From Botryllus schlosseri (Eukaryota), in contig CM119371.1 in the NCBI GenBank assembly GCA_051294905.1, positions 1,860,001-1,924,000 of the forward strand: DNA of 64,000 bases, given 5' to 3'. Below are positions 21,063-28,983 of the stretch, in pieces; the first letter of the stretch is position 1, and every line of letters starts with the position of its first letter. The notes under the pieces are model-generated. The model searched no databases. It saw only the letters and a list, made by a program, of their open reading frames with translations, and was not told where the DNA came from. Made by a program: the position numbers and the translations under genes.

Positions 21063-21274
21063 TTTAACGAAATATATTGGTATAACGCCATTTTAATAAT
21101 ATTCAATAAGGAGTTGGTAAACCTTACGTAATTCCCTGAACTGAGACCCGATAAGACTTTTGTGAGTCGTATATGTTGTCGTGCGAACGTAGATAACAAA
21201 ATATGAAATCGTACGATGTTTTGTGCATGAACTCTCTCTCTCGTGGCTATGAGAGATATGTGTACTGTGTAGGT
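21063..21274 (+). repeat. 5' LTR, truncated to about 210 bp
   Basis: Matches the start of the 3' LTR with 4 transitions and 2 small indels, then runs directly into pol. Confidence 0.85.
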
Positions 21275-21505
21275 AATGCCGCGGTATTTTCAACTTCGTT
21301 TCTGATTGCCTATCTCGTGTTAATGAATTTGTTGTGCCAGATGGCTTGAAACCTGATTTCATAAAGCGTATTGCAGTTGCACAGAGGCAAGACAAGGAAT
21401 TGGCAGGATTTCGTGAGCACTGAGCATACTCTGAGTGAGACTGGTTTGAAGTTAAGAGAGTGGAACTTTGTTGGGTGTGAGATGGGCGTGATTTGTCACG
21501 TCCCA
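21272..21505 (+). pseudogene. Gypsy pol fragment, RNase H end and linker
   Basis: RGIFNFVSDCLSR (NxVADxLSR motif), IAVAQRQDKEL, one frameshift; the last codons join in frame to 25410 once the Harbinger is removed. Confidence 0.75.
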
Positions 21506-21988
21506 GGGTGCGTTCATACATAATTTTCAGAACAAAATTTCCCAGAATAATCCTCAGAATGCCAGCAATGTGAACGCAGTCGGGAATCCCGAGGCTGGTC
21601 TGAACGACATAATTTCCAAAACTTCGGTTCCCAAAAATGTGGATTTGAACGCAGCCAGCCCCGCGTCGCCTGTCAATCATATTCGTGTTTTGGGAATAGG
21701 CGCGTTCAGATCGCGCGGGAAATTACCACTGCATCGTAGTCTGTGCAGTGTGCCCTGTAGTTGCGTTTCTCAAGGTGAATTTGGAAAGAGTTATAATCTG
21801 CAGTTTTATGGGGCCAAATTGGTATGTACGACGTATATCTAGACGTCTACTATGCCTTTTTAGTTGAAATATAGAAGATCGGAATAAGCAGGTGTCATTT
21901 TTACTTGTGTACCGTACAGCATCATATAAATATTTTTTACATTTCTTCTTGAATATAGATAGCTAGCATAATTTTGTGATAAACAAAC

Positions 21989-23030
21989 ATGTCGTCTCGA
22001 GGTATACTATGGTCTACAGAGGAAACCAAATTGCTCGTCGCTCTCTGGGCCGAGAAACAGATCCAAGAGAAAATATCAAAACGATGTATAAGTAATAGGG
22101 AAATCTACGGTAGCATATCTCAATCGCTGCAACTACGGGATCACGATAGCTGTTACAAGAGGATGCAAAGACTCATTCGTGATTACCGCAAGTTCAAGGA
22201 CGACTCGAAGAAAACTGGTGGAGGGGAATTGAGAATACCACCCTCAATTGCTGATGTGTATCCTGTTATCGATGCAACCCTGCAAGACAAGGCCTTGACA
22301 GACCCGATTCTTCTAAGCTCCATGGATGGTGAGTTTCAATGTCATTGGGAGTAAATCATTCTCCTATTATGTTAATTGCAGAGCCAGGCAGCAGTGATAC
22401 GTCTTTTGAAGCTGAGTCAAGTGGTGAGTTATCAATTGCTCCATCAAATTTCATAATTACATTATTTTCATCATTTCCTGTTTGTTTGTTTTTTTCAAGA
22501 AAAAATGTTACTGAAAAGGAAAGGTAACAACGGATTACCCGCCAGTAAGTTTTTTCGCTGTACATATGACTATCTGATAAACTGATGAACAGCTTTTTGT
22601 CTGTAGCCCCAGCTAAGAGAAGAAACAGTGACCTTTCACAAATAAGTGAGCAATATGAACAATATAGAAGATTTTAGACAATAGGATTGTTATTTTCATT
22701 TCAAGGAGAGTTAGTGGAATTGGGACAAGAGAGGTCAGACAAACGGATTGAGTCCATTCTTCAATACCAAGTAATGGCTTACAATTTTTTCATAACCGAG
22801 ACCTAGGATATATTATTTACAATTCAGAGAGAGGAAAGAGAAAAAGAAAGACATGAAAGGGAGCTAGAAAGAGAGCACGAGCTGAAGCTATTCGAGATGC
22901 TGACGAGGTTGGTAGTTTATTGAAAGATTGCTTTTGCTGAACATGCTACATAAAGCTTTTTGTTCTTAGGGCTCATGGAAACTATGTGATACTCCGGTAT
23001 GAGACTCAAGCTTGCTGTCAACTGTCTTAA
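21989..23030 (+). CDS. Harbinger Myb/SANT (trihelix-type) DNA-binding protein, 223 aa; join(21989-22328,22382-22423,22500-22544,22607-22645,22706-22770,22828-22907,22970-23030)
   Basis: WSTEETKLLVALW...CYKRMQRLIRDYRK Myb/SANT-like domain; six GT-AG introns of 53, 76, 62, 60, 57 and 62 nt give a 672-nt open frame with a PAKRR NLS-like motif and an EREKERHERELEREHELKLFEML coiled coil. The last exon is the least certain. Confidence 0.85.
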
Positions 23031-23182
23031 TACAATTCGAATGATTTTTAGGCCCGAGGAACAAAACCTGGAAAACCCAGGAGAGTTGCAGAATAACTGA
23101 TCGAGTGAGAAGTGAAGGCTCTTTCCTCCAAAACTGTTCTTGTTGATGTTTCGTTAAAATTGTGCCATGCACAATTACCAAT

Positions 23183-23202
23183 AATAAATGTGTTTTTTTA
23201 TT
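23183..23202. terminator. Candidate opposed poly(A) signals between the Harbinger genes
   Basis: AATAAA on + at 23183-23188 and on - at 23202-23197, between the two stop codons. Confidence 0.45.
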
Positions 23203-23265
23203 ATTCTGCGGCAATTTTTACTGTAGCAGTCCAGTTTGATATAACTACCACTAATGAACTCAGAA

Positions 23266-25039
23266 CTATGGTAGAGTTAAGAAATCTCTCAGAGCGTCTC
23301 GCACATTCGCTCCTGATACTTCGTCGTCCTCGTATGTCGGCACTGGCTCATCAAGTATTATATCATCGTCCATGTCGTCCCCTAAGGCGTCGCAGAAATT
23401 GTGAAGTATGATGCAAGACGCAATCATCATTCTAGCGTTCGTTGGGCAGGCGTCACAGGATTTGAATAGGCATCGCCATCGCATCTTCAGTTTACCAAAT
23501 GCTCTCTCCACTACCATCCTGGATTTGCTGAGTATATGATTAAAATGACTGCTGTCCCTATCATTTTGAGCATAGGGCTTCATTAGCCACGGTAGTAGAG
23601 GATATGCAGCATCACCAATGATGTAAAATGGTATATTTTGCCCACCAATTGAAAGTTCACTATGGGGAAAGAGAGCCCCACTCTGAGCTTTTGAGAATAG
23701 TTCAGATCTTCTCAGCACCCTTGCATCATGCACTTTGCCAGGCCAGCCAATAACAACATCGATAAACCTCCCCTTGTAGTCGACCACTGCTTGTATGTTT
23801 ATCGAATATTGACCTTTCCGATTCCAGTAATCTTCACCGTCTTCAACAGGCTTTGGAATCGGGATGTGACATCCGTCAATTGCTCCAATACAATTTGGCA
23901 GGCCATTTTTGACACTGAAATTGTGAGCGGCAAGGTGTATGTTCTCGGGTATTTTTACGTGCCTGGAAATACGGTTTGACAAGACTGAGCACACTTCCAT
24001 AGTGACCATGAAGACGGTAGATTTCCCCAAACCAAAGGTCTCTCCAATGTGGCGGTAGCAACTACCACCAGCAATTCTCCATAATGCGATAGCAATTCTG
24101 CAGTCCGGTGATATTGGCTCTTTGTATCTTGTAGTTTGTTTGATAACATCCTGACGCAAATCATCGCACAAGATATGAAAGGTGGACCTGGAGAAGGAAA
24201 TATGTAACATCACACAAAATATAATAGATGAATTTATAAGAGGTATGCCAACTTTTTCAGGAATGATCATATGATTGTTACTACTACTAGCACAGCAGTC
24301 ATTTATTAATTTTCACTGCAATATTTCTGTTTATCAGTAAGGCACTGTGATACTTTTTGAGCATGGAAAGTTTCTTATCCAGGCCTACTACCAATTAACT
24401 GCCCTGTGAAACTGAGCACTTGGATCTGCATGCAGAATCAGTACTAGCAATAGCAAGATAATTCAGGGCCGCCGTTAGTCAGCACTGCTAGTGCATTACG
24501 ATAACGACAGAAACTGTGATTTCGACTACATAACCCCCATTAATGCGTCATACAAATTGTTGTTCCAGCGACAGCTACGCTATAGAATGTAAGTAGAATG
24601 TATAGTTACGCTACCGGTACATTTTATGCAAGAAACGCGACTGGCTCACTATTATAGAACAGAGAATGACTGGGTCTTGCATGTGCGTACGACTAAACTA
24701 ATAACAATAGTACTGCAACACGTTTCAAGAACTTTCTGACCACAATAGCTTCTGGCTCACTTACCTATTTAGACGAAGATGCCTCTTGTAGTCAACCGAC
24801 GTCCAACATTGCAAGACCCTCTCCCAATAGTTTTTATTGGCCTTCAAAACGCTATAAACTCGTCGCGGAGTTGGAGTATGATTCCACAACCACCAAGTAC
24901 AAATCAAGTCAAGAAACTCAGGTTCATCGGCCAACACAGAAAGAAGATGAAGTTGTCGAGTTTTCATGGCCCTTCTACGTCGCCGTTTATTACGCACCAG
25001 CAATTTATATAGAGCAACGCTTATCAAGCTACCATCCAT
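23266..25039 (-). CDS. Harbinger DDE transposase (HARBI1-like), 398 aa; join(25039-24765,24187-23266)
   Basis: Splice AG|GTAAGT...CTCCAG|G gives KRHLRLNRSTFHILC; catalytic-region motifs GAIDGCHIPI, GKVHDARV, GDAAYPL and VVERAFGKLKMRWRCL; no stops. Confidence 0.92.
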
Positions 25040-25409
25040 CTGAGTTGAAAACAACTGTTGTTAATTCACTGCATCACTCATCGCAATCCTTATACTACTC
25101 CCGGCCTCCGGTGCCAATTTATTGGCCATTGTAACGCTCAGCCTTAACACAACGCAGTCTGTTATCAACGATGGGAACACCTCGGCGAGGTGATCTCATA
25201 ACTGCGCTACCTTACGAGGAACGTCGTTCAGACTTCACGATAATCCCGAGAAAAACCGACTAGTGTGAACGCACAATCGCGAAAATTGTGGACTGGTTTG
25301 AACGCTCACATTTCTGGGAAAATTCTGAGGATTTTTGTCCTGATATGAACGCAATAAGTTCTGAGAACATTTCTGGGAATATTATCAGAATTCATGTATG
25401 AACGCACCC

Positions 25410-26830
25410 CCAGATATCGGCGTTAAATCACAGAAGTCGTCTGTAATTCCACGAGTGTGGGTTCCACGTCATATGAGACGGGAGTTGTTTGAACATGTGC
25501 ATTCTTTGTCGCATCCCGGTATTCGGGCGACGTTGGCATTCGCTAAACGGCGTTACGTGTTCCCTGATATGGATCTTTGGTTACGAGAATTTGTGCGGGC
25601 TTGTCCTATGTGTAGCAAAAGCAAAATAATTCATCATGTGCGTTCCGCTTTAAAACATGTGCTGCGCCGTAGTGATCGTAATGCCGACATTTCAATTGAC
25701 ATTGCTGGTCCGCTTCGTGAAACGGAGGATGGTAATCGATATTTTCTTATCATTGTTGATCGTGTCACAAATTACACTAATGCAGTTCCCATGAAAGGAC
25801 AAGATACCGACACGGTGATCCGTGCTTTGATGGTTTTGTTAAAGATCGTGGATCACCTATGGTTATAATGTCAGACCGGGGCTCAGTGTTTACTTCGTAT
25901 AAACGGGAGAAGTTCATGTCGGTCCTTGAATGTAAACACTCATTTTTGTTGGCACTTTCGCCACAGCAGAATTCGATCTCCGAAACGGAGATTCGGCGGA
26001 TAAAGCGCGGTTTGGGGTGCGCTAATAATCCCGCGGCCTGGGATAGGCTATTGCCTTTTGTGATTTTGTCATTAAATGCCTCTGTGAAAGAGGGATATGA
26101 TTATTCCGCGGCGGAAATGACGTATGGGGAAAATGTGCGGTTGGCTGCAACCTATTTTGACCCGAATAAGTTCAAAAATAGTCAAGCGAAGGTACTGTGT
26201 GATGTACGGTAATTTTTCGAGAACTTGAATTTCAATAAGTCCAACATCCGAACAAATGTAAATGCATACGTTCCGCCAGATCTTATGGCTTGTTCACGTG
26301 TATATGTAAAAAACGAGAGAGGTAAGAAGACCGCGTTTGATTTCTGGTATGTGGGTCCGTACAAGGTGATCGAGAGATCGCAATCGGGCAAGGCCTTTAC
26401 CTTATTAATCAAGTGTAAGGAGAAGGTTGTGTCGATTGACAGACTGAAAGTTTGTTACTTTCCGCCATTGGATGTAGATAACGACATGTTCGATGATTTT
26501 GTGCAGCAGTTTCCGACCGTTGATGCGGACAATGTGGTACTAAACTCCGCGGTAACTCCGGGTGACGCGTGTGTTGTGTAGTTTCGTCTGGTAGTGATGG
26601 CAGCGAGAGCGACTGTCCGAGTAGTATCGGTAGCGCGTCCCGAGAGCGTATCCCTGAATGCTTACCTGTTGATGTCGATCGCGATAATCCTAGACATGAA
26701 TCCATTTTGCACGATAAAGCTAGGACCCAAAAATGTAATGAATGCAGAACTCTCAATGAATCAAGTCCAAAGTATACGTCCAGAGGGTGACGAATTGTTA
26801 GACCAAGACATTTGAATGATTATGTGTTGC
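25410..26830 (+). pseudogene. Gypsy integrase, frameshifted
   Basis: HHCC finger (HSLSHPG...CPMC), ISIDIAGPL, MSDRG...SE with exact D-X35-E spacing, GPY/F motif (GPYKV), C-terminal TSRG*RIVRPRHLNDYV; at least three frameshifts or stops. Confidence 0.9.
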
Positions 26831-27825: not shown

Positions 27826-27929
27826 ACGTTGATGGATTTCGTCAGTGCATATAGACTGGTTTCGTCTATGAATTGCATTGTATTGTGTTTCATCTTGTTG
27901 CTCTTTATTATACACTTTCATTAACTTGT

Positions 27930-28180
27930 TGATTGCATGCGAAGTGATATTTAATGTCGCGGTTGTAACGCTTTTGGACTGTTTAATATTATAATTTTCA
28001 TAAGTCTTTGATGATAATATGTTATTGCATGCGAAGTGATCTTTAACGGCACTGTTAACCCGCTTTTGTGCTATTTAGTGATTAGTTATTCAATTGGTGT
28101 TTTATAATATTGTGTTTTTGCATGCGAAGTGACCTTGAATGTCGCTGTTGTAACGCTTCTGTGCTTGTTAAATTATGTCT
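27930..28180. repeat. Three tandem units of 92-93 bp
   Basis: TTGCATGCGAAGTGA at 27933, 28025 and 28118 with similar downstream sequence. Confidence 0.8.
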
Positions 28181-28501: not shown

Positions 28502-28983
28502 TTTAACGAAATATATTGGTATAACGCCATTTTAATAATATTCAATGAGGAGTTGGTAAACCTTACGTAATTCCCTGAACTGAGACCCGATAAGACCTTT
28601 GTGAGTCGTACATGTTGTCGTGCGAACGTAGATAACAAAATATGAAATCGTACGATGTTTTGTGCATGAACTCTCTCTCGTGGCTATGAGAGATATGTGT
28701 AGGTAATGCCACGGGGAGATATTTATTCATTCTATTCATAATTATTCGCTGATTCGGAAGTCCATTGCATTGCCGTACGTGATTCAATAAAGTCGTGGAG
28801 ACGGAAACAAAATATATTCGTCAGTGTGATCCATCGAATACGTAGACAGGTCGTGGTACGTCAGCCAAAAAAGGCCGCACGGTGCGGTTACGCCGGTCCG
28901 TCAAAAGAAGAAACACGCAGCGAATTGTAAACGCAACCTTCTGGAGTCAATTATACAACTACAAACATTCGCTCTGCGTTATA
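28502..28983 (+). repeat. 3' LTR, about 482 bp
   Basis: Starts TTTAACG after the PPT, contains AATAAA near 28784, ends CGTTATA where host sequence resumes. Confidence 0.75.

Follow-up and report, generated by a model that had tools for sequence, protein, structure and literature searches.

The 64,000-nt stretch of the Botryllus schlosseri genome analyzed here (contig CM119371.1, positions 1,860,001 to 1,924,000; hereafter the window) harbors a 3,904-bp PIF/Harbinger element at window positions 21506 to 25409, which we read, with a probability of about 0.82, as a recently inserted transposon of the autonomous PIF/Harbinger (PHIS) type with a NuwaII-like target habit. The features that place an element in PHIS are all found: short terminal inverted repeats (TIRs) with a target site duplication (TSD) of 3 bp, a DDE_Tnp_4/IS5-like transposase with an intact D, D, E triad, and a second gene for a Myb/SANT-like DNA-binding protein. 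An earlier note, made from the letters alone, had described an intact, potentially active two-gene Harbinger with identical 16-bp TIRs, a duplicated CCA, an uninterrupted 398-residue spliced DDE transposase and a 223-residue, seven-exon Myb gene with introns of 53 to 76 nt and exons as small as 39 to 45 nt. Our analysis confirms the repeats, the duplication and the open transposase, reproduces the Myb model exactly, and bears out the overall description with near-identical copies at other loci, flanked by different duplications, and with spliced transcripts.

The sequence GGGTGCGTTCATACAT is present at both element ends in inverted orientation, and the two TIRs match at 16 of 16 positions, extending to 21 nt at 90% identity; they open with GGGTGCG, having the GG start found in the NuwaII group. 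A CCA lies on each side of the element as a 3-bp duplication. Empty sites are provided by nine paralogs of the host retroelement, 84 to 93% identical, which read ...gtcacgtcCCAgatatcg... with one CCA only, and the matches to the left and right flanks overlap by exactly 3 bp; the element boundaries and the CCA duplication are therefore exact and not due to chance. The empty form of this locus (C1:1,881,506) corresponds to ...GTCCCAGATATC.... The flanks together constitute one broken reading frame of a long terminal repeat (LTR) retroelement pol, with the frame at 21371 to 21505 resuming beyond the insertion, and the right flank matches Integrase_H2C2 in Pfam (1e-14), with the integrase zinc finger and core left as short broken frames. 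The element has inserted recently into this dead retroelement remnant.

The two genes of the element are convergent. Each exon was searched separately against Pfam and for homologues, with the joined proteins used only for frame, length and substitutions. The transposase gene, on the minus strand, consists of two exons that encode 398 residues in a stop-free spliced model. Exon 2 aligns with the whole of the Pfam DDE_Tnp_4 model (positions 1 to 158 of 158; 8e-34), and D104, D192 and E227 of the exon 2 piece occupy invariant columns in an alignment of 11 proteins, which by position correspond to approximately D196, D284 and E319 of the full-length model. A total of 1,562 homologues of exon 2 was retrieved, the best sharing 45 to 48% identity, and those that carry names are HARBI1 or ALP1-like. 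A record search for contigs encoding a 334-residue open reading frame gave no match, nor did an Rfam scan of the element. The Myb/SANT gene, on the plus strand, starts with an ATG at 21989 and comprises seven exons of 340, 42, 45, 39, 65, 80 and 61 nt (223 residues), separated by six GT..AG introns of 53, 76, 62, 60, 57 and 62 nt. Its exon 1 matches Myb_DNA-bind_4 at 5e-8, above the curated Pfam cut-off; a word search with exon 1 found no match within its allowed length range, longer relatives falling outside the scope of that search.

To place the window copy in the context of its family, we searched the 495-Mb assembly at the DNA level, which yielded few copies, and took the window copy as the reference for all identities. 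The 16-nt TIR pattern finds 19 matches in 495 Mb compared with one for a control pattern, and 16 remain after three false matches (L049 to L051) are dropped, these sharing one identical common flank and no other similarity to the element, and thus belonging to another repeat. The near-identical copies that the earlier note had proposed counting exist and have their own duplications. The C7 copy (99.5% identity) retains both genes open, with a 110-bp deletion in the transposase intron and a G-to-T change of the first TIR base, and the C15 copy (98.8%) has a +2 frameshift in the transposase gene and contains a nested 1,356-bp hAT-like element. A third copy, C5 (94%), has both genes open with a 6-bp in-frame deletion; four other copies (92 to 94%) are truncated or frameshifted, the C14 copy (78 to 85%) is a relic, and three short copies are internally deleted derivatives. 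The window copy, which lies on C1, alone combines perfect ends, two open genes and no internal deletion. Three copies are young: among 3,781 comparable sites, private substitutions number 9 in the window copy, 14 in C7 and 21 in C15, and the window copy is taken as the youngest because it has the fewest. An alternative in which these copies are assembly duplicates was rejected, since both flanks and duplications differ between copies.

Two copies show later disturbance. The nested element in the C15 copy, at element position ~335 (L002 5065-6420), is non-autonomous; CAGTGGTTCCCAAC forms its ends in inverted orientation, and its duplication, GTCTAGAC, is 8 bp long. Two loci, L005 (C1:24254268-24257535) and L011 (C1:24308300-24308930), represent the left 3.3 kb and the right 0.6 kb of one 92 to 94% copy; they lie ~50 kb apart with the same CAA duplication, the element having been split by large later insertions or by rearrangement.

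Transcript contigs from three runs of three studies contain the exact transposase splice (24185>24763, with CT..AC ends), and one contig of 1,309 nt spans 25096 to 23211 in spliced form, covering the entire coding region with four substitutions, none of which makes a stop, and no gap. Comparison of the window transposase with that of the C5 copy yields a ratio of nonsynonymous to synonymous substitution rates (dN/dS) of 0.10 (22 synonymous and 8 nonsynonymous changes). For the Myb exons, 13 of 14 substitutions relative to C5 are synonymous (11 of the 12 in exon 1), giving a dN/dS of 0.02 (p=2e-8). These ratios point to purifying selection on both genes during the history of the family. At sites where the window copy has private substitutions, the transcripts carry the ancestral base, alongside variants absent from all assembled copies (24155T, 24879C and several in introns). 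Among the Myb contigs, one agrees with the C5-type subfamily. The family is therefore expressed, and the variants from outside the assembly point to further copies or alleles in the population.

Other observations from the runs concern further copies. In run X14, a 1,216-nt contig with a depth of 50 begins beyond the element and reaches into the leftmost 275 nt (21506 to 21780) with seven differences; a left-end copy or short derivative thus seems to form part of a well-expressed transcript at another place. Runs X5 and X6, labeled as two other organisms, contain 80 to 82% of the element 31-mers and so harbor near-identical copies; the two labels may stand for the host under a synonym or for its close relatives, or the runs may hint at sharing between species.

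Several observations weigh against a recently inserted transposon of autonomous type. The family is of very low copy number and shows no burst of short derivatives. A different copy or allele is the source of the transcripts, which are therefore not evidence for expression of the window copy itself, and the raw RNA run X21 gave zero reads on the element and is uninformative. Four of the six Myb introns are seen only as retained, in low-depth short contigs; the window copy carries a private D18A in the Myb domain, at a position that is variable in sister families (T, E, I or Q); the Myb-like protein as reader of the subterminal repeats is a likely role, as judged from Harbinger3_DR; and this sequence analysis revealed no transposition event. 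The rival that makes most of such points, and which we consider a serious one with odds somewhat short of even, is that of a young but already immobile relic, a member of a family inactivated by host silencing, by too little Myb protein or by defects of the D18A kind, and now awaiting decay. It accommodates a population of only ~10 elements devoid of amplified MITEs (miniature inverted-repeat transposable elements), the visible defects of every other copy (the frameshift and nested hAT in C15, the first TIR base in C7, truncations elsewhere), and the nine private substitutions of the window copy, by which it is not brand new; moreover, convergent genes together with contigs left unspliced over the Myb gene could reflect antisense read-through. 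It does not readily account for two open genes between perfect ends, for intact transposase mRNA in animals of three studies, or for variants outside the assembly that suggest more copies or alleles in the population. Judged by its sequence, the window copy looks coding-competent; that it still moves today is a proposition we rate just under an even chance.

A second question concerns the structure of the Myb gene. The earlier note had called for junction reads across all seven introns of the element, and these are found in part: the transposase intron and Myb introns 1 and 4 have RNA joints in transcript contigs, and the other four Myb introns do not. Beyond introns 1 and 4, the predicted exon model rests on evolutionary support. 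All six GT..AG pairs are kept in the C5, C7, C15 and C11 copies, the broken 92% C1 copy being the exception with AA at the acceptor of intron 4; all indels relative to the intact C5 copy fall in introns; and the small exons 2 to 7 diverge by 0.9% compared with 4.9% for the introns (p=0.003). In sister families of this genome, Myb exon 1 is 43 to 59% identical, and the position and phase of intron 1 are those of the window gene; intron 1, the 39-nt exon 4 and the intron 5 position are shared by families at 43 to 52% protein identity. Exons 4, 5 and 6 are recognizable among them: sister family L070 has a 39-nt exon 4 of like sequence with its flanking introns, and L076 has the same intron 5 position and exon 5 end. 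Since intron positions are common to these sister families, the intron-rich structure is old in the clade, and the intron density that the earlier note regarded as peculiar is instead a lineage trait.

The same observations argue against the rival in which the Myb model is partly wrong, which we regard as unlikely while still taking it seriously. In one form of this rival, an alternative donor at 22996 opens an intron at 22997 to 23051, the latter being the acceptor, followed by an eighth exon at 23052 to 23100, which yields a 228-residue protein with the frame equally open; in the other, intron retention gives a DNA-binding-only product that stops at 22525-22527. Run X14 lends itself to the latter, as the transposase intron has zero depth there and Myb introns 2, 3, 4 and 5 are covered at depths like those of spliced contigs; the contigs carry no strand information, however, and the retained introns may thus be antisense or pre-mRNA. 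No RNA contig supports either the exon 7 or the eight-exon C terminus, which may be that of the 223- or of the 228-residue form. Both element-encoded proteins harbor basic stretches resembling nuclear localization signals, KRKGNNGLPATPAKRR across Myb exons 3 and 4 (22500 to 22645) and RNKRRRRR near the transposase N terminus (24960 to 25000). The Harbinger3_DR transposase reportedly needs the Myb-like protein for nuclear import.

A more speculative reading, to which we assign only a slim chance, is that of a still-mobile Harbinger of a chordate-like marine invertebrate that is throttled at Myb mRNA processing, its tiny introns being spliced inefficiently or in a tissue-limited manner, such that most transcripts may yield a truncated DNA-binding-only protein or may pair with antisense transposase read-through. 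If true, this would represent a splicing brake comparable to that of the third intron of the P element, and the relaxed C|NNA|G target would make for a gene-transfer tool less site-biased than TWA-bound Harbingers. Finally, domestication as a host gene pair of the HARBI1/NAIF1 kind, which would fit the strong purifying selection on two transcribed genes, is next to impossible, being refuted by the empty sites and by several copies that occupy unrelated loci and have TSDs of their own, alongside decayed family members, perfect TIRs, a proven TSD and an insertion site in a dead retroelement, where a domesticated pair would be TIR-less and confined to a single locus.

As a recently inserted transposon of the PHIS type, the element belongs to a family whose target differs from the canonical one. 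The duplications of complete copies are CCA, TCA, TAA, CAA, ATA and TAG/TAA; besides the window copy, four have matching 3-bp duplications and one the pair TAG/TAA. The canonical TWA (TTA/TAA) duplication is thus not the rule here. Counted inward, position -4, outside the duplication, is a C in 14 of the 20 ends of the family (p=2e-6), the third duplication base is A in 18 of the 23 listed ends (three of these being false), and of the six complete pairs three have T as the first base. The family target is C|NNA|G and that of the window copy C|CCA|G, with the C 5' and the G 3' of the duplication that characterize NuwaII. CCA, which the earlier note had considered an atypical target, is therefore not anomalous, since the conserved bases adjoin the duplication rather than lie within it. 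Of 20 ends, 19 have a G next to GGTGCG, compared with 14 that have a C at -4 (p=0.09), which mildly favors a 3-bp duplication over a 5-bp (CCCAG) reading. The NuwaII group is described as having a C|TNA|G target, TIRs that start with GG and genes for DDE_Tnp_4 and Myb_DNA-bind_4 proteins, with the same 3-bp versus 5-bp ambiguity, and includes one tunicate family and one family with C NNN G (Han et al. 2015, PMC4482050).

The TIR core TGAACGC (GCGTTCA) is found in four copies per element end, which account for eight of the 12 matches in the window. In the ends of the 92 to 94% copies, TGAACGC positions are changed at one of 168 compared with 52 of 1,032 elsewhere (p=0.004), and we consider the subterminal repeats probable candidate protein-binding sites. 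In Harbinger3_DR, the Myb-like protein binds the TIRs and both proteins are needed (PMC2836001). By analogy with this system and with Ping/Pong, the Myb-like protein would bind the four TGAACGC repeats of each end, including the TIR core, and would recruit the DDE transposase and possibly aid its import; the transposase would then cut at the GGG...CCC termini and reinsert the element through staggered cuts 3 bp apart.

Table 1. Features of the Harbinger element and its insertion site, in window coordinates.
Feature	Position	Strand	Basis
Left CCA duplication copy	21503..21505		Single CCA in the nine paralogous empty sites
Left TIR	21506..21526	+	Identity to right TIR
Left subterminal region, three further TIR-core copies (21571, 21646, 21702)	21571..21708		
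Myb exon 1, DNA-binding domain	21989..22328	+	Myb_DNA-bind_4; intron 1 RNA joint
Myb exon 2	22382..22423	+	Gene model; left boundary is an RNA joint; splice sites in copies
Myb exon 3, basic KRK stretch	22500..22544	+	Gene model, copy comparison
Myb exon 4, AKRR basic stretch	22607..22645	+	Right boundary is an RNA joint; similar L070 exon
Myb exon 5	22706..22770	+	Left boundary is an RNA joint; exon end as in L076
Myb exon 6, charged helical REEREKERHERELE stretch	22828..22907	+	Gene model, copy and sister comparison
Myb exon 7 with stop	22970..23030	+	Gene model
Spacer between the 3' ends of the two convergent genes	23031..23265		Rfam, no match
Transposase exon 2, including the stop; DDE catalytic domain plus helix-turn-helix region	24187-23266	-	DDE_Tnp_4
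Transposase intron, 577 nt, GT..AG	24764-24188	-	RNA contig joint
Transposase exon 1, ATG at 25039, basic RNKRRRRR	25039-24765	-	Covered by the 1,309-nt spliced contig
Right subterminal region, three further TGAACGC copies (25266, 25299, 25346)	25266..25352		
Right TIR	25389..25409	-	Match to left TIR
Right CCA duplication copy, then G	25410..25412		Empty sites
Host: decayed LTR-retroelement pol remnant	25398..26756	+	Integrase_H2C2

Two further features lie in the surrounding DNA. Of the left flank used in the search, the first 180 nt (21106 to 21285) belong to a separate high-copy repeat that is 91 to 94% identical at many loci and recurs 7.4 kb downstream in the window, at 28545 to 28714. 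Downstream of the retroelement remnant, positions 27912 to 28170 contain three tandem units of ~92 nt with a common TTGCATGCGAAGTGA core.

Among animals, Harbingers that are naturally intact with both genes are uncommon; the tool element from zebrafish reportedly had to be reconstructed. With perfect ends, two open genes and transcripts in the species, the window copy is a reasonable candidate for an excision assay, and it offers a clean case for the choice of a C|NNA|G target, for a protein that reads TGAACGC repeats and for the retention of Myb micro-exons. A naturally active animal Harbinger was first reported only in 2026, from a nematode (PMC13668399). The element is otherwise ordinary genome content that leaves knowledge of the superfamily unchanged, and its odd-looking target and many small introns are ordinary traits of its lineage.

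The closest known systems, compared here by published description, are NuwaII elements, represented by NuwaII_CSav of Ciona savignyi and by NuwaII-1/2_BFlo (Harbinger-2/3_BF) of amphioxus. Like these, the window family has two genes (DDE_Tnp_4 and Myb_DNA-bind_4), a length of ~4 kb, TIRs in a group range of 13 to 46 bp that start with GG, and a duplication of 3 bp between a C and a G that is subject to the 3-bp or 5-bp ambiguity; unlike these, its duplications do not all begin with T, as CCA, CAA and ATA are found alongside TCA and TAA, and its copy number is much lower. With canonical PIF/Harbinger elements (maize PIF, rice Ping/Pong with mPing, zebrafish Harbinger3_DR and C. inopinata Harbinger-1M_cIno), it shares a two-protein system, short TIRs, a 3-bp duplication, the DDE_Tnp_4 catalytic core and repeated subterminal motifs. 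In Ping/Pong and Harbinger3_DR, both element-encoded proteins are required for transposition (PMC2836001). The canonical elements use TWA targets, and several have large MITE families, whereas in the window family the target is relaxed to C|NNA|G, short derivatives are almost absent and the Myb gene has seven exons. HARBI1/NAIF1 and the plant ALP1/HDP1-HDP2 proteins have homologous domains but are encoded by single-copy host genes that lack TIRs and duplications, which the window element retains.

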